Shown in pieces: positions 19,042 to 61,370 of a DNA stretch of 64,000 bases. The stretch is from Selaginella moellendorffii. Taxonomy: Eukaryota; Plantae; Lycopodiophyta. Below the pieces are notes generated by a model. That model had not been told where the DNA came from. It did not search any database and saw only the letters and a list, made by a program, of their open reading frames with translations. Location: assembly GCF_000143415.4 (NCBI RefSeq), contig NW_003314370.1, positions 186,001 through 250,000 on the forward strand, given 5' to 3'. The position numbers and the translations under genes are program-made. Numbering within the stretch: position 1 is the first letter of the stretch; every line of letters starts with the position of its first letter.

Positions 19042-20709
19042 ATGGTTGGGACGATCAAACACCTCTACAACAGTCGATGGATGGTTGCATTGGCAAGTTT
19101 CTTCCTCATGATCTCCACGGGAGGATCACTCAACAATTTCAGTCTCTTCTCGCAGCATCTCAAGCTGTCCCTCGACTACAACCAAAAAAATATCAACACC
19201 ATAAGCTTATTTAAGGACGTTGGCACCAGCGTCGGGATTCTCTCCGGCCTCGTCTATGATCTCACCGGGCCCTGGGTCGTGCTCCTCCTTGGATTTGCGC
19301 TAAACTTTGCTGGATACTTCACGATATGGCTGGCTACAACGCAGAGAATCGCACACCCCCATGTCTGGGAACTGTGCTTCTATCTCTTTATGATCGGCGC
19401 ATCGGCAGCCTTCACCACCACCGCTGTTCTTGTGGCCTGTGCCAAGAATTTCCCCAAGAACCAGGGCATGGTTCTTAGTCTTCTCGACAGTACGCAGGGA
19501 TTGAGCGTTGCGATATTCACGCTGCTTTACCAGGCCTTCTTCTCTCACAGTGACGATTCATTCGTTCTCTTGCTGGCCTGGTTTCCATCGCTCTTGTGCC
19601 TTCTATTCGCGTTTTTCATTCGATCCGTCCCACTCGACGGCCGCTACAATGACTCGAGAACGCTCTTCGTCTTCGTGTCAGTAACTTTGATCCTGGCTGG
19701 ATATCTCATGGCTATTATCATCCTCCAGCACTTCGTGCGCCTAGAGTCTCGGATCATCAAGGCCTTCTTTTCCATTATGCTGATCATTCTCTCCATCCCA
19801 GTTCTTGTGGTTCTGAGACAGGAATCCAAAACCCTCCGGCATCGCCATCGCGAAGAAGTTGATGTTGATCTAGTGGAGAACGCAGCGATAGAAACTCCTC
19901 AAACAGATTATCAACACGTAGATCGTCCGGATCATGGGGCAGACGCCGCTGCTCCAGCTATCGCCTCGCACATTTCGATCTTCTTCGTTAAAGGATCGCC
20001 CGTCAAGCGAGGAGACGATTTCACAATCCTCCAGGCGCTCTGTAGCATCGACATGTTTCTCATCTTCGTGGCCTCAACCTGTGGCATTGGCGCTGTGCTA
20101 ACCGTGACCAACAATTTCGGCCAGATTGGAACGTCCCTTGGCTACTCCCAGGCCGGAACAAACACTTTCATCGCCCTCCTTAGCATCTGGGACTTCATCG
20201 GTGGCGTTGGCGTTGGCTTCATCTCGGATATATGCCTCGCCAGCTATGGCGTCGCAAGGCCCTTCTTCCTGTGCCTGGTTCTCTTGCTTCTCTCGCTTGG
20301 GAGCTTGATAATCGCTCTTGGGCTTCCCGGAGCGCTCTTCTACGGCTCGGTTTTGATTGGGTTGTCAATCGGTGGCCAGTGGTCGGTTCTTTACACCATG
20401 ATAGCGGAGATCTTCGGGCTCAGGTTCTATGGGACGCTCCAAAATGTAACTTACGTCGCTAAGGCGCTGGGAACTTATGTTTTGTCCGTCCGGGTGGCAG
20501 GAGTTTTATACGACCGCGAGAGTAAGCTTGGACCGAGCAATGGAAGTTTGGATGGTGATGAGCTCCTTTGCCATGGACCACATTGCTACAGAACAACCTT
20601 CTTTGTCATGGCTGGAGTGTGCTTGTTTGCATCCATTGTGAGCTTGATCTTGTCCATTAGAACAACAAAGTTTTATAGTGTCACTCTTCGAAAGAGATTA
20701 ACTGGTTAA
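19042..20709 (+). CDS. Major facilitator superfamily, nodulin-like/NFD4-like transporter (555 aa, intronless)
   Basis: LDYNQKNINTISLFKDVGTSVGILSGL, NFPKNQG, RGDDFTILQAL, EIFGLRFYGTL, CHGPHCY; many hydrophobic helices. Confidence 0.93.
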   Translation: MVGTIKHLYNSRWMVALASFFLMISTGGSLNNFSLFSQHLKLSLDYNQKNINTISLFKDVGTSVGILSGLVYDLTGPWVVLLLGFALNFAGYFTIWLATTQRIAHPHVWELCFYLFMIGASAAFTTTAVLVACAKNFPKNQGMVLSLLDSTQGLSVAIFTLLYQAFFSHSDDSFVLLLAWFPSLLCLLFAFFIRSVPLDGRYNDSRTLFVFVSVTLILAGYLMAIIILQHFVRLESRIIKAFFSIMLIILSIPVLVVLRQESKTLRHRHREEVDVDLVENAAIETPQTDYQHVDRPDHGADAAAPAIASHISIFFVKGSPVKRGDDFTILQALCSIDMFLIFVASTCGIGAVLTVTNNFGQIGTSLGYSQAGTNTFIALLSIWDFIGGVGVGFISDICLASYGVARPFFLCLVLLLLSLGSLIIALGLPGALFYGSVLIGLSIGGQWSVLYTMIAEIFGLRFYGTLQNVTYVAKALGTYVLSVRVAGVLYDRESKLGPSNGSLDGDELLCHGPHCYRTTFFVMAGVCLFASIVSLILSIRTTKFYSVTLRKRLTG

Positions 20710-21598: not shown

Positions 21599-22261
21599 TC
21601 ATTGAAATTTCTGTTTGTAATCGCTCCACAACTGATCCACACTCTTTCCAGTCAGATCCTGGAAGTAACTTTCACTCCACCCGTCATAGAGCTTCTTGTT
21701 AAGCTCTGCCACAAAGCTGGGATGGAGATCGTTGACATAGTTTAGAAACAGTGCAGTCACGGTATACCCCTCGTCCCAGTGGCTCCCCGACCCCACAAAC
21801 CCATTGGTCGACACGCCTAGCTTAGCCTTGAGCCTCATAAAGTCGGCAATCCCCTCGATCAGTCCCTGTGGCGCCCGGCTCCCCTCCTTGCCGAACCACT
21901 GCCAAATGTGAGTCATCTCGTGGTACAAGACGCTTAGGAGCTCAAAAACCAAGTCTCCAGTGAAAGTAGCAACAAACTGTGCGCTGAGATGGATCTCCAC
22001 ACCAATGGCGTAGGCCACCCCAGGCATGTCGTCCACTGTGAAGTGGATGGTGTCAATCTCCTTCTTGGGTGTGTCGGGGCTCATATACTAGAAGCCAAGC
22101 TGGACGAAGGCCATGGCGTCGGCGAGGATGGAGAGGGCTTACTCCCATGACAGAGTCGAAGCGCTGGCCTCCCGGGGATTCTGTGTTGTGTTGGCGCCTG
22201 TGATGGAGGTGCCTTGAGTTACCTGGAATGTTGCTAGGATAATGAGGAGAAAAATTGCCAT
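21599..22261 (-). pseudogene. plant basic secretory protein (BSP/PR-17) pseudogene
   Basis: Signal peptide MAIFLLIILATF, GGQRFD, YHEMTHIWQW (HExxH), GLIEGIADFMRLKA, WDEGY. A frameshift near 22140 and an in-frame TAG at ~22088-22090 cut off the N-terminus. Confidence 0.85.
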
Positions 22262-22668: not shown

Positions 22669-23860
22669 TTGTTTTCGTATGCCCTTAATCTTTGCCTGGA
22701 GCCGGAAGAGCTCATCCATCTCCTCCTCACCTGCACATCCCTGCGATTGGTCGATGGTGGTAGGAAGCTCCACGCCCATATCTCCCGTCTGGGCCGCCTT
22801 GAAAGGGATGGGCGTCTCGCGAGTCACCTCATCGACATGTATGGCAAGTGCGGGCATTTGGACGATGCCAACCAAAGCCTTGACGCGAGTAAGGGGAGCT
22901 CTCTCTCGTGGAGCGCGCTCATCACGGCTCACGGCTCATGTGGATCGATCGGAGGGGCTGTTGGCCTGCTGGACGACATGGAGGACAGGGAATTCTCCCG
23001 GATCAAACCGCCCTCTTGACAGCGCTCAATCTTTGCTCCACACACGGCGCTCTCGCAGGGGGCATTGTGGTACACAAAATAATAGCGGATCCTGGGCTGG
23101 AGAAGAATGTGATAATCTCAAATGCGATTATCAACATGTATGGAAAATGCGGCAAAATCGACCAATCCAGAGCTTTCTTTGATAGAATGTATTTGCGAGA
23201 CACAGTGTCTTGGAACACAATTGTTTCAGCATATGCCCAAAATGGGCATCAGTCGGATGCAGTGAAAATGCTCTTTGTCATGCAGCTCGAGGGTGTCAAG
23301 ATTGGAAAAATCGGATTCGTTACACTCCTCAAGGCTTGCTACGACCCAATGTTCCTGCAGACCGGCAGACTCATTCACTCTTGTCTTGCGGAGGATGGTC
23401 TCCATGAGACGGACGTCACCACCGGAACGAGCCTCGTTCATATGTATGCAAAGTGTGGCAGCCTTGCGGAAGCGCGAGAGATTTTTTAGCGGATGAGCTG
23501 CAAGAACAGAGCCACGGGAGCGAGCTCTCACGCTCTTCCGAGTGATGCAAATGGGATCCGGCACCATGCCAAACTCCATCAACTTCGTCAGCGTCCTCTC
23601 GGCGTGTAGCCACGCCGGGCTCTAGGACGCTCACTGCAGCTTTGTGTCGATGAGGAGCGACTATGGGATCGCCCCCGCTGCGAAGTACTACGTGTGCATG
23701 GTCGATCTTCTCGGGCGATCGAGGAGATGGTACGTTTCGTAGGAAGCTCTCCAGTGGAGGGCGATGCCGTGGTGTGGAGGGCCGTGCTGGCGGCTTGCAG
23801 AAGCCTCAGCAAAGTTGAGATTGGGAACCGAGCTGTTAAGCGGACTCGTGATTTAGAAAA
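22669..23860 (+). pseudogene. PLS/E-class PPR pseudogene
   Basis: LIDMYGKCGHLDDA, NMYGKCGKIDQS..DTVSWNTIVSAYAQNG, HMYAKCGSLAEAREIF*, DAVVWRAVLAACR, split across frames with stops. Confidence 0.85.
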
Positions 23861-24949: not shown

Positions 24950-25835
24950 AGTGAGTTCGAACCGGTTCGTGAGGCAAAGGCCAAGACTTGTTGTTTAAGG
25001 CGTTCTCGAACCAGCCGGATCCACAGAGCTGTGACAGCTAGTGCTGGACAAAGGAATGGAGCATCTGGTGCATTGTCAATCCATACTTCGCCGCAGCGGA
25101 AGAATCTCAATTGAGGCTATGGTGTTCCAGCTCCCCAGTTAACCATGTACATACCCCTATAAATTCTCTCTCCTGATCTTGTTCCAGGGTACTGCAGCTG
25201 GCGGCACGCCTGAGGTTGTTGCGGATAGAACCACCGGATTGCTTAGCCCGGTTGGGAAAGAAGGTGTTTCAGCTTCAAATGGCACAGTTAGAAACGAGCA
25301 TGGCCGGCAACGGTTCCTCGTATTGCAAATGCACTGAGACAGATATTACAGCAGCAGCAGTGAGCACATTTGGCTTCTGCTTCTCGAGCATCACGGACAT
25401 ATTAGTGCTGGGCCAGCATGTTTGTACAGGAGGCGGGTAGGGTCTCCCAGGCATAGATATCCTTTGGGAACAAACAGAAGTCGTGTTGTACCGAACAGAT
25501 CGAGCATGCAGAACTAATTCGGTTGAATGTGGATGTCGGCTGTCATACTTTGGAAGGTTTCTCAGGCGGCTGCAACAGGCGCACAAAGACCATAGCATCC
25601 TTCCCTTGGAAGATTAATATAGCTTTCTGCTTATGCCCAGCCAGGGCATAGCATGAGAATGGTCTAGGAAGAGGTTACGAGCCAGCATGGCTCGGTTGGC
25701 TTCAGCCATATGTATGCTGCCAGCATTGCATTTGCACTCTACATTTTCCGTAACTTGCTTGCTCTGAGCGTAGCCACCTGACATGCTGCATTGTCGAATT
25801 CTCCGCAGCGATTCACATACAGAGTTTCCATTATT
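24950..25835 (-). pseudogene. highly degenerate PPR remnant
   Basis: Scattered minus-strand motifs LYVNRCGEFDNA, NAMLAAY, KQKPNVLT, ICLSAFA and SWNTIA in shifting frames. Confidence 0.5.
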
Positions 25836-25991
25836 TTTATCTGCAACCAAGTTTCCAGGTTCGTTTTGATGATTTGAATTTTTGGAGAGAGCGTGACCAA
25901 GGTATAATCAAGGAAATTTATCTAGGACAGCTTATATACTTATTAACTTCACACGTTTCCTTATGGAATTAATACCACACCATATACGCAA

Positions 25992-26882
25992 TTAGTGTTT
26001 CGGTTTTGGACGCGGAGGTTCATCAGATCCATCGATTGCACATGGTGTAGCCTGGCTCATGCTGAGGTCGTGCCAAACTTGGAGGTACGGGAACAGCCCG
26101 AGTACACGGGCACGCTCACTCTCCATCAAAGCGCGAAACACAGACCTGTATAAACAAAAGCATATATAGAACGCGTACAAACAGCGGGAGATTCACCTGA
26201 TAAACACCATCACGGGCATGGTGTTGATGGGAACACTTAAGCCAGCGATGCTGTCATGGTCCGTCACTATGGCTCCCAGACGTGGAGTCTGTCCGAAAGG
26301 TCCTTCACTGCTACTACTTGCACCTCCAGCTTTGAGACAGTTTACACATCGTTTGACGCACACGACATTAGATTCGCCTTTCTTCTTCTGGTGCTTCTGC
26401 ACGGCGTAAGTTGTATCAGCCGACTCATTCACTCGTGCCAGCTTCTCGAACACAGCATGCTCCGCACAGTTCTCGAAGTCGCGGCCCTTACTGGGCTTGG
26501 CCTCTTTATCCTCGTCGAGAAGTGCCAAGTGGAGCCTGGAATGGGTGTCATCATCAAAAGCTGAGACTTGAACTCCCAGCCTCTTCTCCACATCCTTGAT
26601 GCTTACTGGATTTGGTCTACCCCCTGCCATGTCCATCCTCAAACGAACGTTAGCACCCACAACTCTTGTTCCTTGTTCCGTGACTCCACAGCACAGCACA
26701 TCGCTCACTTGCCCCTTCTTTGCATGCTCAATAGGAGCCTGGCGAACCAACATCCCCAAGTGCAAAATGCGCAGGAAATGGATGAATGCGTCCCCATCGC
26801 TGAGACCTGGAATACCTTGCAATGCCTTCCACAGCTTTTGAGCATCGGCAAGGTTCACCTGCTCAGAATCCTTTGAGGCCAT
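25992..26882 (-). CDS. orphan protein with cytidine-deaminase-superfamily zinc motif (279 aa, 2 coding exons)
   Basis: GCCATGG start at 26882. A 51-nt GT-AG intron (26146-26196) joins the exons in frame. Motifs VLCCGVTEQGTRVVGANV, NCAEHAVF and KRCVNC. Confidence 0.7.
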
Positions 26883-28383
26883 GGCTTTTTGAGAAACGCC
26901 GTCCTGCTGAAGGTTATTTATCACATGACTAGCCGGCGATTGTACAGGGAGGGAGAAAAATAAAAAGAAATGTCTCATGCACAAATTGACGTTCCATCAG
27001 ACAGCTTGAAGTTGTGACGGCGATTGAGACCTCCAACTTGTCAGTCTATGATCTACTTCTTTAGTTCAGCGTCTCTGACTGTCCGGAAAGGTCGAGTGCT
27101 ACGATGCTCCACTCAGTTTTGTGCCAATGTCACATCATTCAACAACAAAAATTTTTTTTTAACTCATGTGCTTGCCCTAGTCCTCAATGTGAGCTGTTTG
27201 ACCGCAATGCTTAGCATGAGTGATCTAGCTTAAAGTTCATCAGATTTTGGAGAGGCGAAGACGGAACCTTTCTCCCCTTAAACGCACCTCTAAATCTTGA
27301 AATGCTGATCGACAAATTTCTAGTATCTGTTTTTGCTTGTGAATCTAATGCTCACTCTTTGAAGCTTGCACTTCTCCTCACACACACACACACATATATA
27401 TGGTCTAGCTTTTCTTTTCGTTGCTGGCCAAGATCAGCACAAAAGAGAAGAAATCTTCAGGTATGGCTGTACTCTTCAGTATTTTGTTTCTTTATTCCTT
27501 CACTACGATCTGCTCATATCTATCTGTAGGCAGCAGGGGGAAAACCACTGCTTGGATGTTGGACATTAGTTTTGGGACTGGGTTGCTCCAAGCATCACTC
27601 TATACTATGGCGCTCGATTGAGGTTTGGCCATGGCACTAGATGCAGAGCTCTAGACTATGGCGAGGAAGAGACGGACATTTTTCCATTCCATCTCAGTTA
27701 GAAACCACATGCCTAATCATCTAGAATAGAATTGGAACAACTCCTGGTCATTTCAGAAATAGAGGCAACGAGAGTCAATAGCTATCTCAATCGATTTCAC
27801 CAGAGTAGCCAGACCTGGAGACCATCCCAGTTAAGGAGATAATGCTACACTGAGACCGTTGGCCCCAAGGATAGAATTGAGTTTTGTCACCCATATCACA
27901 AATTAAGTTTCAGTGCGCCTGAAAGGTTTTGGATTCAGGCAGAGTTTCGAGATCAAGGATCTGAGCTTGCATCACCATGCTTACATCGGAATTTAAATAG
28001 AATCAAAACACCGTGTACCTGAGAGTTCAAGGGTCGGGATGAGAAACGTCTGGACTGCCCTCCACGACCTCAGATGTCAGACTCCAGTTGCTTTAGAACG
28101 CACTGAATTTACGTGAAGAGCTGCATCAAACTTAAACGTTGGTTAAGTATTACCTGAAAGCTATTTGAACACGTATTAAATTAAAGAAGAGCAGGCGAAG
28201 TAGGTACTGACTGCTTGACTAGTGATCAAACATGTTGTTATAAGCTTTCAAAGGTTACTGGCCAATTGCAAGGCTATGGCGAGGAAGAGATGAAGCTATT
28301 GTTCCATATTTACAGAGGGTGTGAATCCACACACACATATGCTATTAATTGAAAGAGGTTGTTTTCTTCTTTTTTTCTGGCTG

Positions 28384-53466: not shown

Positions 53467-54139
53467 ACATTTCTCCCATCCACATAACATCAAATTAGTA
53501 CTTAAATGTTATGTATAAAAGAAAAAATATGATTTTTTACATAACAAAATGATGGAATGTATATAATGGTCTCAATATCATATTTCTTACAAACTTTCAT
53601 AGTAACTATAACTTGCATTTTTTGGAAATCACAATCCAAGATACACATAATAGTTAGTCCTAAATAAATAAAAAGAATAGGATAGATTATTGCAACAACC
53701 AAAATGTAAATAAAGCATAACTTACCAAGTACACTCATTATTGTTTATTTCAACACATGGTAAAATTATTAAATAGATTAACCATTCCAAGTGCTTCCAG
53801 TGGCGTTGATCATCCATAACTTGTTAGCTCCATCTATTGAAGCACAATAGTTCCACCGATAATGCTTACCAATTTAATATTTTTTATGACTATCTAATGT
53901 ATGAGTTCCACATAAACTCAATCATTGATATTGGCTTTTTATAAATTCTCCCAAGAAGCACGTCCCAAATGAAAAAAGTTGTATCAGTATTATAACTAAA
54001 GCTATAGCTCCATTATGGCTATAATTGCTACCTCCACTATAGCCACAACCACTGCTTAGTCTTAGAGTTTTGAGAGCTCATACTATTATTAACATTGTTA
54101 CTAGTTAATGTAAATAAAGATCTCACTAATAAATATATA

Positions 54140-54910
54140 TAATTTACCACAACTTTTGTGATTTGAATTATTGTTCCACCTCTTAGCCCTCCCACCGCTA
54201 CAAGTGCTACACTAATACTCTTGCTAATTAATGCAAATAAAAATTTTATTAACAATTAAATACCTTTTGCCACAACCCTCATTGGAACTACTATTGGAAT
54301 TATTATTTTTTATCTTTTAACCCTCTTATTTTTATAGGTGTTACTATTAGTATTTTGCTATTTAATGCAAAGAAAAATCTTACTGATAAACACATATCTT
54401 GTTTTATAATTCCCGCTAGAATTGCTAATCTACCTTTTAGCCCTCTCACTACTATAAGTGTTACTTTTAATATTCTTGCTAATAATGTAAATAAAGATTT
54501 TTATCATAAATACATACCTTTTGCCACAACTTCTATTGGAAACATTCTTTTGCCTCTTAACCCTCCCATTATTATAAATGTTTTTGTTAGTATTCTTGCT
54601 AATTAATGCAATAAAAATGTTTATTGACAAATACATACATTTTGTCACAATTCTTGTTGAAATTATTACTCAACATCTCAGCCTTTTTGTAGTTATAGTT
54701 CTTGTTGCAAGGAAATATCTTAGTGAGAACACATATCTTTTACCATAACTCTTATTAAAACTATCACTTTACCTCTCAACACTTTTGTTATTACATTTGT
54801 TAATATTAATGTTTTTGTTAGTTAATATAAAGAAACATTTTCCTTATAAACATATACCTCCTACTTTATCTATTGAAATTGCCCTTGTTCCAAACCCTCC
54901 CATTGTTATT
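54140..54910. repeat. degenerate ~120-bp minisatellite, about 6-7 units
   Basis: Recurring CATAYCTTTTGYCACAAYTC...CCTCTYAACCCT...TATTCTTGCTAATTAATGCAA blocks at ~120-bp spacing. Confidence 0.7.
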
Positions 54911-57900
54911 CTTGTTAAAGGAGCATTAACTGGAATTATTTTTAATCAAGAATAGTTTATTGATAAATATTTTTGTATTGCTCCAAAATCTCTTAAGGCT
55001 GTTCCGCCTACTACTAATGGCATATTAACCCTAAGTAACGAAAAAAAAATATCATTTCCTACCTACTACTTTCTTTGGTGGTTTGTAGTAAACAAAAACT
55101 AAGATGACCATTATCTTGTTAATTTTCCTTCCATAATACTTTAAACTAGCAAGATAAATTTTATATTTTGGGCATTGATTGCCCAAATATACAAAAGTTC
55201 TTTCATAAAAAACTTTAGGACATTGTGAAAAAGTTACTTCCACTACAACAACCATATTATCAATTAAGCCATCTTTGAGGAGAGGAATTACATTTACACT
55301 AATAACTTTTACAAAACATATGCAATATAAATATTTTCTTCTCTAAATTAATAGTAGATTTGATAACAACAATCAATAAACCTCCTATTTAGGCAAATAA
55401 TGAATACCAACAATTATCTATATTTTAGAGTGCAATTGAAATTTAACTCTTCAACTATTATACTATCTAATATTTGTTTTATCCTTTTTTAACAACAATG
55501 AAAGCTATTTTAATTTTTTCTCTTCCTCTTTATATCCTATCTGAATAGTGAACTCAATTAAACAACTTTCTAAGGGCTTACAATGTTTTAATCAATTCTA
55601 AACTTTGTACCACTTGTAGGAGTTTTGGGCCATTGACCAACTTTAATAGGCATGGGTGAGAGCATGTCATGTAAAATAAAAAGGTAGAATAGTCTATACT
55701 TGGAAATTCCTTTAACATACTATTATTAATGGATATAGGGGGCTGCTAATAGCCAAATTGAGTTAATAAAAAAGTCACAGCCTATTAAAATAACACCCAA
55801 ACTAAGCCAGTTAGGTATTAGTCAAGCAAGTAATGTTTAACGGGATGTGCTTATGAACCACTTTAACAGGCATATCCTAAGTCTATTGAGGTAGTACATG
55901 TGGCACTTAATCATTGTTAATTTAATCAAATCTTACTATATATACTAAAGTACAACCTTAGTATGATTTTCCTACTCAATCTAGTAAGGCACTTTAAATT
56001 ATTTGCACAACTTCATGGATTTTCTATGGCTCATGGCATGGTATAAAAATTCATTTAGCACATTCAATTTTGCTCAATCTAGGGTTTATGGTTACTAAAG
56101 TTTTTAAGTATTTGAAAGAAAGGTTGAAGTCTATTGAGATTGTGTGAATTATTGTAATGCTTTCTTGTAAAAGTTAAATGGACAAGATTAGTATTAGAGT
56201 TGATAACCAATTAAAAATTTAACACATATATTTTTCAATGAATCATGCTATTGTGTAATCAATATGTATTGTGTAATAAATAATTAAAAAAGCCACATTA
56301 ATGCCTCATTTAGTGAGGAGCTAGTGAATTGTGTAATTATAAAATACATCTTTATATTGTGGCTTAAAAGGCTAACTTTTACTTATACACTCTCCCAATT
56401 CTACTGATGAAGCATGGCCTAGCCAAAAAACATGTATTAAAGAAATATTTCAACTCTAACCTATTATAAATTAGGCTGCAGAGTAATAATATCAAACATC
56501 TCCTTGATATTTATGCTCTTTACACTAAAACAATTATAAAATTTGTGTTTCAACCATTACATTTATGAAAGAACTTGGTGTCTTTTTGTGCACTTAACTC
56601 AAGTGTCATGGTGGCATATTATAGAATAGCAACACTACAACATAGTAAAACTTGAGCTATTTTGGGTGTTTAACTGAATGGTATTGTTGTTATATTATAT
56701 ATTAGTGGTGTCAATCCACTATTATTAATTCTTTAGTAGTTAATATATAAAGATCAACTCAATTTTCAATAGCAAGATGTTTAATTGATTTACTCTAAGT
56801 TGTTAAATAATTCCATAGGAGTAAGTGGAGTGGAATTACTTCCCTTTGGAAAGGTATTTACTAATACTATTATACACTAGCACTCATAAATTGAAAAATG
56901 AAAGCATGGTTTATATATGTTAACACTTTTTATCAACTATATGGCCAAGTGTTATTACATTTGGTGAAAAAGATCTTGTTATAACTCTTTAATGTTGTTA
57001 TCCTCACCATCACCTTAGTATTTACTTTAGTGATGTTTGTGTTTTTTTGTTTTAAAGAGTTTCTTCTAGTGGTGGAAGAATATCCTCCTCTTCATTCACA
57101 AAGTCATCTTCTTTAATGATTTTTATTTTGGTTTGGTTTTTGTACAATTACCCTTGAGAGGAATTCAAAGAGTTATCATTTGTAGTAAAAATGTTTGTAG
57201 TATCTAAATTATAAGGACAATAACATATATTTATAAGAAGGATATTTAATCAAGAAAATGGTTTATGTTTGTGAATATTCCTTTTCTCAAGTGTTCAATT
57301 TTTTTAAAAATATTTTAGCCAATGTTTACTAGTGAAATGCTCTATAATATTATATAGATAAATTATCATCACCTAATTGTTATTGGCTTTGTTTGTTATG
57401 GCTCCCTATAAAGTTTGAGGAGAACAATAGTAAGCCTAGATGGAGTTGAGGCGAAAGTTTGTGGCTTTAGGATGGGTTTGGGTGCCATTGGACTGCCTCA
57501 AATGTTAAATAAACATTTCAAGATTAGTCATAGATAAAGGTGGAATTCTTGAGGTTTAAAATAATAGTAGAATCATATGTTAAACCATGCGCAATTGGAA
57601 AAGAATGTTATAGTATAAATTATCGTACATGAAACATTCTAAGATGTCCACCTTTAACTTGTTTAGTTCTATCACTTTTACTATTCCCTCTCTTTTCCAT
57701 AGTTTAGATGCCAAGTCTTGGTGAATGCAATCCACTTAATGATATAAGTTGTAGTGAATGGCTGGAGGACCAAGGATATTTGATAATAAAATGCCACTAA
57801 CAACTTTGGATCGGCTGCCATAACATTCATAACAATAAGACAAGGATTGCTGATTATTATTGGCATAGATGTGCATTGTAGTAATAAGTGGGGAGATAGT

Positions 57901-58680
57901 TTATCACCAAACCAAAAAAAAAAAAAAGTCAATAGTATCCAAAAAAAATAAAAATATAGTGGTATATCTATGGCTAAAATAGTAGCCAATCTTGAGGGTT
58001 GACTTAAATATTTATATTGACCCTTAAAGCAGCTATGAAATTCTAATGGGAAACGAGTTTGCTAGTGTCGCAACATTGTTAACTCAATTTACAGAAAAGA
58101 GCACATGGAAAATAATATTGAGCTAGGTTGTTTTTTACTCTAGGAGGTAGATGGCCATATAGCATCATTTGAGTGGCAGATGGAGTAGTGGCACTTGAAG
58201 TGACCAATTGAGTAGGGGTAGGTGCAAATGGGCTGTTAGTATCAACACTAAATAAACTTGTATGAACACATATCATAGTTGTGTTAGTGGCAATGCAACC
58301 AACTAAACACCACTATGGGCTTGGGGCATCTAGACTTGCTTGTTCTAGATGCTTGGGCTGCTACTTTCTAGAAAAGAGGGAGAGGAGAAAGAAACATATT
58401 ATAGGTTTAGCATATGTTGCAATATATGCAATATTAGACAATATTTCACTTGCTCAAACACAGTTAAGAGTTATAGGTGGATAGCATCAAAGTTAAGGTC
58501 TCCACTGTAGATTTTGGCAAATTGAGTAAATGGTTGGTTATCAAAGGTAATTGCACATTACCTTTGATTATGAAACATCAAGTGGTTGATTGCATGCTCA
58601 CTAAGCATTTTCTACATAGTGTCTATTGTTATAGGGGTGGGTGGGGCAAACTTGCAAAACAGAAAGGATTGGTTATACAA

Positions 58681-58790
58681 ATTTATATAATTGGGGACAA
58701 CATAACCACAATCATAGCTATAATGCTCTTGCTTGGGCAACAATTTTGTGATTATAGAAAAGCCTCCAATGTTGTTTGTGTGGTAATTGT
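58681..58790 (-). mobile_element. Ulp1/C48 protease relic, probably from a decayed DNA transposon (MULE/CACTA/Helitron)
   Basis: Minus strand reads LPKQEHYSYDCGYVVPNYINL, matching the PxQx(3-5)DCG catalytic-Cys motif. Flanks are AT-rich and full of stops. Confidence 0.45.
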
Positions 58791-59829
58791 GCTCTCAGCT
58801 CATCCAATTAAATCCTCATATGACTCAGCAAAAATGAACCATTAATGAAATCATATATAGTGTAATTATAAAATGAAATCACTTTGTATTTAAGGCATAT
58901 GTGGGACTCACATAGAAACTCTAACATTTATGATTTGTGTTGAGTATGGCCAAGAACAATTTTGCCCATTAGATCATCCATTGCACATTCAATTATTATA
59001 AATGTATATTTTTAGTTTAGGTTGAGTCCCTCCAAATGTATTACAAAAGCCTAGTTCTAAACATTGTTGAAAGCCCAATGTAACCAAGGAAAACAAAATA
59101 TATTAGAATAAACATAACTATCATTGCTTTAAAGATTATCTTTGATAAAATTACACCTTTCAAGTTAAAGAAAAATGGTTCATGCATATCTTCAATACCT
59201 TTTCCATCAACAACCAACATGATAATTCTATATAAACACAGTTTATGAGGAATTCTTTCAATTTGTTACTTGAGCTCTTGTTTCATTAGTTAAAGTAAAT
59301 TTGTAGGAACATGAGATAACTTGAAGTAGTCACCATATTGATAGGGACGGACTTCATAAAGATTCTAGGTTGCAACCCATATCCTTCATGAGGTATTAAG
59401 CAAAGATACAATATATACTCTGCATATGCCATAGATTAGATATGTTAAGAATTTTTAATTTTTTTGGAAACTCAAAAAAGTGTTTATAAAACCATATTAT
59501 GCACTCAAAAATCTCTCTCCACAAATACTGAATATGCTATAAAATGAAATGGATTTAATCCTTATCTAGGTAAAACTCTAACATTATGAGTACATTGCTA
59601 TATGTAAATGTCCTATATATAAAACTCTTGGCTGTGGATCCCAATATTGGACTATGTCCCTCTCAACCTCATTATACTATAGAGTATTATTGTTTGAGAT
59701 GTGTATTGTTGCTCAATGAATAGTTTGTATGTATGTATTATGAGATTTTTAAAGGTAGCTCATTCACAAGCTACAATATAATGAGTCACATCACAAAATA
59801 TGAGATATATAAACATAACTTATAAATAA

Positions 59830-59833
<4 letters not shown>

Positions 59834-59899
<66 letters not shown>
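59834..59899. repeat. (TA)n microsatellite, ~33 units
   Basis: Read directly from the sequence. Confidence 0.98.
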
Positions 59900-59901
<2 letters not shown>

Positions 59902-59920
59902 ATGTCTTTATATATAGAAA

Positions 59921-61370
59921 TATGCGAGAGTGAATGTGTAAAAATACAAGAGTACGAGCAACAAAGAGAGTGTACCTCTTTTTGTGTATATGTCTCAGTG
60001 TCCTGGCCCCCTTTTTCTTATAGAGCGAGTGCTCGGGCGCCCCTGTGGCAGACTGGGTGAGTTCTCCGTGGCTCTAACCTCTTGCATTTTGCTCTGGCTA
60101 CACTGAGACCCTCTCACACTTAGAGCCACCGACACTGAGACACTGGGATTTATGGATGTGTGAATACAGATATAACGCAGTGCCCCTTTGGGTGGTACCT
60201 TGACATATACACCTTTCAAGTTTAGAGTGTCAATATACAAATATTTATGAGGGGGAGGCTCGGAAATTCCGCGAGAGCGTGTGCGGGAGCTTGTGCTCAC
60301 CGACTTACGGCTCCCCACAAGCGCCTCAGGGCCAAATGTGGCCACACCCCTCTATCCACATATCGCAAAAAATGGCCCAAACCCTAGAGACAGAAAACGC
60401 GTATATGTCCACACCTCTAGGAATGTATATATCTATATATATACACGTGTCCCCATCTCTCTCTCTCTANNNNNNNNNNNNNNNNNNNNNNNNNNNNNNN
60501 NNNNNNNNNNNNNNNNNNNNNNNNNNNNNNNNNNNNNNNNNNNNNNNNNNNNNNNNNNNNNNNNNNNNNNNNNNNNNNNNNNNNNNNNNNNNNNNNNNNN
60601 NNNNNNNNNNNNNNNNNNNNNNNNNNNNNNNNNNNNNNNNNNNNNNNNNNNNNNNNNNNNNNNNNNNNNNNNNNNNNNNNNNNNNNNNNNNNNNNNNNNN
60701 NNNNNNNNNNNNNNNNNNNNNNNNNNNNNNNNNNNNNNNNNNNNNNNNNNNNNNNNNNNNNNNNNNNNNNNNNNNNNNNNNNNNNNNNNNNNNNNNNNNN
60801 NNNNNNNNNNNNNNNNNNNNNNNNNNNNNNNNNNNNNNNNNNNNNNNNNNNNNNNNNNNNNTATACTACAATGAATGTGTTATTATATATAATTACAAGC
60901 AACAAAAATAGAAGAATACTTATAGTTTATATAGCAAAGTGTATAAGCCTCCTTTTTCTTATAAATCTATTATTCAAGTGCCTCTGTTGTAGCCTGGCTG
61001 AGTTATAAGTGGCTCAAACCTCTTGAATTTTGCATTGGTTAAATTGATATCCTCTAACAATTAAATCCACCTAATTTGTGCCACTATGATTTATGGCATT
61101 GTTATTACAGATATAATGAAGTACCTTTTTGGGTGGTACCTTGTAATATACACCTTTCCAATTTAGATTGTCAAATTACAAGTATTTATAAAGTGTTGGC
61201 TTGGAAATTCTAAAATAGCATGTGAGGTAGGTAGTGATCTTAGTCTTAAGGATCTTCAGATGCATCTAAGTGCCAAATGTGGCCATACTACTAAATCCTC
61301 TTATTGCAAAAAATGATAGAAAGTCTAGAAACATATAACTAGAAAATGGCCAAACCTCTAGGAAAGTAGC
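59921..61370 (+). repeat. ~500-bp diverged direct repeat on either side of the gap (59921-60430 vs 60862-61370)
   Basis: Collinear anchors TGAATGTGT, CCTTTTTCTTATA, GGGTGGTACCTTG, ATATACACCTTTC, GCCAAATGTGGCCA, ACCTCTAGGAA. Confidence 0.85.
60470..60861. other. assembly gap (392 N)
   Basis: Run of N. Confidence 1.

Follow-up and report, generated by a model that had tools for sequence, protein, structure and literature searches.

A gene on the minus strand of a 64,000-nucleotide stretch of the Selaginella moellendorffii genome (RefSeq assembly GCF_000143415.4, contig NW_003314370.1, positions 186,001 to 250,000 of the forward strand) encodes a protein of 279 amino acids (aa) that, judging from its structural model, is probably a new kind of base-deaminating enzyme. 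The whole stretch is hereafter called the window, and its first letter is position 1; the gene spans positions 25992 to 26882. We consider it likely that this expressed gene belongs to a new, vertically inherited clade of zinc-dependent deaminases known so far from lycophytes and ferns; the zinc binding, catalysis, localisation and substrate of the protein are those that we infer from the motifs, models and comparisons described below.

Gene structure and transcription

The gene consists of two exons with 840 nt of coding sequence, from the ATG at 26882 to the stop codon at 25992-25994 (all coordinates of this gene refer to the minus strand). Exon 1 (26197-26882) comprises codons 1-228 and two further nucleotides, and encodes the N-terminal helices along with the entire deaminase-like core. 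It is followed by a 51-nt GT..AG intron in phase 2 (26146-26196) and by exon 2 (25992-26145), which contains the last 51 codons, encoding the C-terminal helices and tail, and the stop codon. The gene corresponds to SELMODRAFT_448059 of S. moellendorffii, to which the exon 1 translation is 100% identical; LOC112351222, 98% identical to this translation, is the allele on the other haplotype.

Contigs from four sequencing runs, each from a different study, cover positions 25883-26947 and skip the same 51 nt. Because the contigs lack the intron, these runs are RNA, and transcription and splicing of the gene follow the model exactly. The two-exon, 279-aa structure put forward in the preliminary description of the region, made from the DNA sequence alone, is thus matched by spliced transcripts. 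The RNA contigs begin at about 26935-26947, with adapter directly after 26947 in run X1, which delimits a 5' untranslated region (UTR) of 65 nt (26883-26947). This 5' UTR holds a one-codon upstream open reading frame (ORF), ATG TGA, at 26921-26926. The 3' UTR (25883-25991) was traced as far as the end of the longest RNA contig.

The GenBank model of SELMODRAFT_448059 (338 aa) has a third exon at 25614-25850 on the minus strand that is not supported by RNA: the contigs read through to the stop codon at 25992 and end at about 25883. The deposited 3' end hence looks mis-modelled, whereas the allele's RefSeq model (281 aa) agrees with the RNA-supported structure. Variants among the RNA contigs (five nonsynonymous and three synonymous) are too few to interpret.

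Predicted fold and catalytic signature

The AlphaFold2 model of the protein, built from a 10-sequence family alignment, reached a pLDDT of 80.3 and a pTM of 0.83. In this model, a helix (residues 29-47) is followed by two strands (59-67 and 73-77), a long insert, a helix (140-150) opening at a CAE motif, a strand (157-167), an extra hairpin (170-175), a helix (180-186) opening at a CxxC motif, and, with no helix in between, two short strands at about 203-205 and 216-218; both termini carry additional predicted helices.

Residues 62-79, VLCCGVTEQGTRVVGANV (26646-26699), which had been likened to the first two strands of cytidine deaminases, fall within the region predicted as strands 1 and 2 and include G76, which is invariant in the family. 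About 60 residues separate this segment from the CAE motif; the insert (26469-26651) is the weaker part of the model, with pLDDT of 56-64, and contains the invariant residues A108, R116 and L117. The CAE motif itself (C139-A140-E141, 26460-26468) lies at the N-terminus of helix 140-150 and would contribute one zinc ligand and the catalytic glutamate, and C179-V-N-C182 (26337-26348), at the N-terminus of helix 180-186, would contribute the second and third ligands. C179, within KRCVNC (26337-26354), is located 40 residues past C139 and is preceded by R178, not by proline; the positions of both motifs and the lack of this proline are exactly as initially described. In the segment from LGAIVTD (residues 202-208) to VPI (217-219), at 26226-26279, a short loop connects predicted strands 4 and 5. 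DSSP assigns a strand to residues 203-205 and a bridge to residue 216, with no real helix between them; both strands are short.

Searches with the predicted structure retrieved deaminases of the cytidine deaminase (CDA) type. In the Foldseek search against the PDB, the best 50 matches were all cytidine or blasticidin-S deaminases, the best of them with E 0.087 and a probability of 0.91, and a shape search of the ESM Atlas yielded cytidine-deaminase clusters at TM 0.57-0.63. For the Diphasiastrum homologue (see below), the single-sequence model from the Atlas retrieved first a YwqJ/RHS toxin-deaminase cluster and then CDA clusters. By language-model features, the nearest named families were YwqJ-deaminase (the best, at 0.87-0.88), MsddA-like, Toxin-deaminase and OTT_1508; the sole non-deaminase among them was Urocanase_N. 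The top neighbours by these features were two unnamed clusters, mostly from Ascomycota, of 241 and 225 aa (0.92-0.93, with 184-197 shared features). Both ranked at the top for the window protein as well as for the Diphasiastrum homologue, which is only 33% identical, and these clusters may be a fungal sister family.

In the model, the protein adopts the three-layer alpha/beta/alpha fold and superposes on solved deaminases, with [H/C/D]xE predicted at the N-terminus of helix 2 and CxxC at that of helix 3. Individually, these lines of evidence on the fold are moderate; joined with a catalytic signature placed at the right helix N-termini, they make it very likely, as far as a model can indicate, that the protein has the zinc-deaminase (CDA) fold. 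Given this topology, the three cysteines are predicted to cluster around one site.

Several observations weigh against this assignment and against the function suggested by it. Sequence comparison failed throughout to link the family to any deaminase: Pfam and NCBIfam gave no deaminase match for any of the 10 family members at E up to 10; phmmer and hmmsearch against the PDB gave no match for the window protein, the family profile or a core-only profile; and hhalign of the family with E. coli Cdd (NC_000913) returned an uninformative probability of 0.2, aligning only the CxxC with PCGHC. The core taken alone (residues 26-226) folds poorly, with pLDDT of 56, and the terminal helices seem to be required for confident folding of the core in the model. 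Finally, the closest among the solved structures are of enzymes that work on small molecules, and this counts against a polynucleotide substrate.

Family members and conservation

In an exhaustive HMMER profile search over 1.84 billion representative sequences (E < 0.001), the family amounted to nine representatives: the two alleles, the Selaginella paralogue SELMODRAFT_430527, one protein each from Diphasiastrum complanatum and Adiantum capillus-veneris, and four transcript contigs from public runs. The clusters of these representatives add a second Diphasiastrum isoform and a protein of A. nelumboides. The latter is a 623-aa model, probably a merged one, the C-terminal 350 aa of which contain no informative domain. 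Seed plants, bryophytes, algae, fungi and bacteria were absent from the labels of the matches, four of the nine members having no taxon label. Two more word-indexed homologue searches with the family alignments, at E up to 10, detected no new member and no fungal or bacterial relative. As judged by sequence searches, the family is small, and lycophytes and ferns are the only plants in which it has been detected so far. Pfam has no model of it, and the literature searched neither names its locus tags nor describes such a deaminase in ferns or lycophytes.

At identities of 28-44% among the members, 26 positions remain invariant, including C139, E141, R178, C179 and C182, along with G203, V206, T207 and D208 of a GxxVTD motif and V217-P218. 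Both CxE and CxxC are retained in every full-length member; at such low identity, this conservation, together with that of the other invariant positions, exceeds what is expected of chance motifs. The first motif reads CAE throughout, except for a CSE in one member. The second is always preceded by arginine and followed by leucine, arginine, lysine or methionine. The spacing between the two motifs varies from 40 to 52 residues, and the segment between the strand 2 motif and CxE from 53 to 76 residues.

In a maximum-likelihood tree with midpoint rooting, the family falls into two groups (support 100/99): group A, with the Selaginella genes and a partial Adiantum gene, and group B, with Diphasiastrum and Adiantum genes and the transcript contigs. 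The paralogue SELMODRAFT_430527 is encoded at a separate locus, is 41% identical to the window protein, and shares its motifs and intron position; it starts with MGSGHS and has a longer loop before CxxC (spacing of 49 residues versus 40 in the window protein). Two members of subfamily A, P0003 (L001:4-876) and P0004 (L007:6001-6936), open with MGSGPS or MGSGHS, which fits the N-myristoylation consensus, whereas the window protein opens with MASKDS and has no such start. Close to their C-termini, subfamily B members P0005, P0007 and P0010 have in common a short acidic motif, SGxxxxxFD[DE]E[IM], which subfamily A lacks and which may be a docking motif.

Relationship to known deaminase clades

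We compared the family with the clade synapomorphies compiled by Iyer et al. 2011 (PMC3239186). The CDA/blasticidin-S deaminase (BSD) clade is characterized by C[H]AE in helix 2, PCxxCR in helix 3 and a conserved glutamate ending strand 5 (PMC3239186). The CAE in helix 2 of our family is of this kind, and, together with the fold matches, leaves room for a small-molecule deaminase like cytidine or blasticidin-S deaminase. Its substrate would be a free nucleoside, a nucleotide or a natural product of nucleoside type, and it would serve salvage, the detoxification of microbial nucleoside antibiotics or specialised metabolism. The remaining features do not fit well. The family has RCxNC in place of PCxxCR, and VPx is followed by xT(P/M/A/L)xV, with no conserved glutamate after strand 5. 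In CDAs, an Asn-x-Glu motif after strand 2 binds ribose; it is not conserved in the family, which shows GASSxLR at this place. There is no match to the Pfam CDA model (PF00383) in any member, and the approximately 60-residue insert after strand 2, the hairpin before CxxC and the additional N- and C-terminal helices are foreign to CDA/BSD; the window protein, at 279 aa, is about twice the size. We therefore regard a small-molecule deaminase as a real but minority possibility.

[quoted passage not shown] The clade (PF14431), with its relatives SCP1.201/DddA and BURPS668_1122/SsdA, permits the CxE variant, and our family carries inserts at the same two places, the first of 53-76 residues and the second being the extra hairpin at residues 170-175. 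The glycine two residues before the cysteine is present only in P0007, however, and the family has neither a conserved histidine in the insert nor a match to PF14431.

In the helix-4 division, AID/APOBEC and OTT_1508 proteins combine HxE...PCxxC with helix 4 and a long loop that joins strand 4 to helix 4, and OTT_1508 has GxxK before CxxC; another Selaginella gene, SELMODRAFT_427619, has been assigned as a divergent OTT_1508-like deaminase (PMC3239186). The signatures of both groups are absent from our family. Within the division marked by a C-terminal hairpin, strands 4 and 5 are antiparallel, without helix 4 between them (PMC3239186), and in its predicted shape the family is closest to this division, which includes CDA, blasticidin-S deaminase and several bacterial toxin deaminases.

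DYW deaminases have HxE, CxxCH and a C-terminal DYW tail, and are fused to pentatricopeptide (PPR) repeats. Members of our family have CxE, no histidine after CxxC, no PPR or DYW match in Pfam and no transit peptide, and no DYW structure was found among the top fold matches of the window protein. Since the family does not match the motifs that define the CDA/BSD, YwqJ, DYW, OTT_1508 and APOBEC groups, it reads as a separate group, and looks like an undescribed clade of the zinc-dependent deaminase superfamily. The proposal that the protein fits none of the standard plant deaminases is borne out by the negative Pfam searches with all members.

Mechanism, substrate and localisation

In the mechanism that we propose, C139, C179 and C182 would hold the zinc ion, E141 would activate the zinc-bound water, and a cytosine-type base would be hydrolytically deaminated. 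Pointers to the substrate diverge: the inserts are found at positions typical of polynucleotide-targeting toxin deaminases and the Asn-x-Glu of CDAs is not conserved, but the nearest folds act on small molecules. We slightly favour, still as a tentative choice, cytosine in RNA, DNA or another polynucleotide or, put more broadly, a nucleic acid or nucleotide; a free nucleoside or another small molecule is a somewhat weaker candidate. A more specific version, a nucleo-cytosolic polynucleotide cytosine deaminase of seed-free vascular plants, analogous to AID/APOBEC and independently derived from the CDA/toxin-like hairpin division, is conceivable and is advanced here as speculative. The APOBEC-like mutator directed against transposons or viruses, suggested in the preliminary description, is likewise a speculative possibility.

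It is rather improbable that the protein is not an enzyme, be it a structural or regulatory zinc protein on a deaminase scaffold or a protein with a different fold in which CxE and CxxC form another type of zinc knuckle. The glutamate of CxE is invariant and would be needless in a purely structural zinc site; both motifs are predicted at helix N-termini, as in all deaminases; and two predictors, applied to two members that are 33% identical, both retrieved deaminases first.

Every member opens at the same conserved helix (NLxxAxxLW) and has 5-10 Asp or Glu among the first 40 residues; in the model of the window protein, the helix starts at residue 4 and pLDDT is 97 from residue 11. Overall, the proteins are mildly basic (pI 7.7-9.3) and contain several invariant arginines and lysines. 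An acidic, structured N-terminus leaves no space for a plastid or mitochondrial transit peptide. These acidic, structured and conserved N-termini argue against organelle import and, hence, against a role in trans with PPR proteins; the most likely place of action of the protein is the cytosol or the nucleus.

Such a role, that of a trans-acting organellar C-to-U deaminase serving DYW-less PPR proteins, had been envisaged in the preliminary description, and has in its favour that the catalytic residues of a deaminase fold are intact, that the lineage shows very heavy organellar editing (PMC4174432), and that a broken PPR fragment lies 3 kb away. Apart from the lack of a transit peptide, the myristoylation-like MGSGxS start of two subfamily A members speaks against it; adjacency of genes carries no functional meaning in this plant genome; and no labelled match comes from a seed plant or moss, even though both edit. 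We find this explanation highly improbable.

Origin and inheritance

The intron lies in phase 2, within an arginine codon that follows a V(M/L)xx(I/F) motif, and measures 51 nt in the window gene, 60 nt in the Selaginella paralogue and 193 nt in Diphasiastrum. This conserved intron and the two old subfamilies, each with a fern representative, favour ancient vertical inheritance over recent transfer. The midpoint-rooted tree fits a duplication before the lycophyte-fern split, followed by loss in seed plants. The remaining alternative to a purely vertical origin is a very old transfer from a toxin system, before the lycophyte-fern split.

That the gene was acquired recently by horizontal transfer from a bacterial toxin system, or is a bacterial contaminant in the assembly, is extremely improbable: although YwqJ, RHS, MsddA-like and Toxin-deaminase clusters are among the neighbours by language-model features and ESM structure, and the inserts occupy the two insert places of the YwqJ clade, the position of a spliceosomal intron is kept in Selaginella and Diphasiastrum, the window gene has plant genes around it and its contig is a plant one, two alleles are known, as is a paralogue with 41% identity, the fern copies are located on records of 136-181 Mb, and bacterial matches number zero among the 1.84 billion representatives. 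Thus, of the suggested lineage-specific or horizontally acquired deaminase, the restriction to a lineage and the lack of a place in existing classes hold, whereas recent transfer does not.

Genomic surroundings

The genes near the deaminase-like gene imply no functional link with it. A nodulin-like MFS gene is located at 19042-20709, followed by a 161-aa minus-strand ORF at 21599-22084. This ORF matches the BSP family (peptidase of plants and bacteria) with E 7e-48 over positions 51-207 of the 207-position profile and is probably, judging by this match, the last exon of a live gene. PPR repeats occur in two overlapping frames on the plus strand, at 22669-23019 and 22908-23489, which suggests a frameshifted pseudogene. 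The deaminase-like gene had been considered the only intact gene between about 21 and 35.8 kb and to be embedded among PPR pseudogenes. It is itself intact, but the BSP-family ORF looks intact as well, and PPR-like fragments were confirmed only at 22669-23489, with no PPR match in ten further ORFs at 23.3-25.4 kb. Remains of the protease and reverse transcriptase of a long terminal repeat (LTR) retroelement were detected at 29.7-31 kb; no LTR pair that could serve to gauge the C-to-T decay suggested for nearby retroelements was found at 27-37 kb.

RNA contigs of 1.4-2.0 kb from all four runs overlap the window along just 30-44 bases, at 27609-27652 (44 in run X1, where the contig has unmatched sequence on both sides). 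This segment resembles either a small exon belonging to a different spliced gene or a short shared repeat. The G+C content drops to 0.29-0.31 at 54001-60000, compared with 0.42-0.55 over the first 52 kb of the window.

Implications

To our knowledge, the organellar PPR-DYW editors are the only established polynucleotide cytosine deaminases in plants. An expressed, conserved, stand-alone zinc deaminase without organelle targeting would represent an unrecognised base-modifying activity, predicted here for early vascular plants. New deaminase clades are wanted as base-editing tools; the functional statements made here are predictions, which limits the value of this family for now, but if it deaminates polynucleotides, a new class of base editors could grow out of this compact, stand-alone protein. 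Within the plant, the targets of such an enzyme would be nucleic acids of viruses or transposons, or nuclear transcripts. The family appears to be about as old as the lycophyte-fern split, and its possible roles include metabolism, RNA modification and defence.
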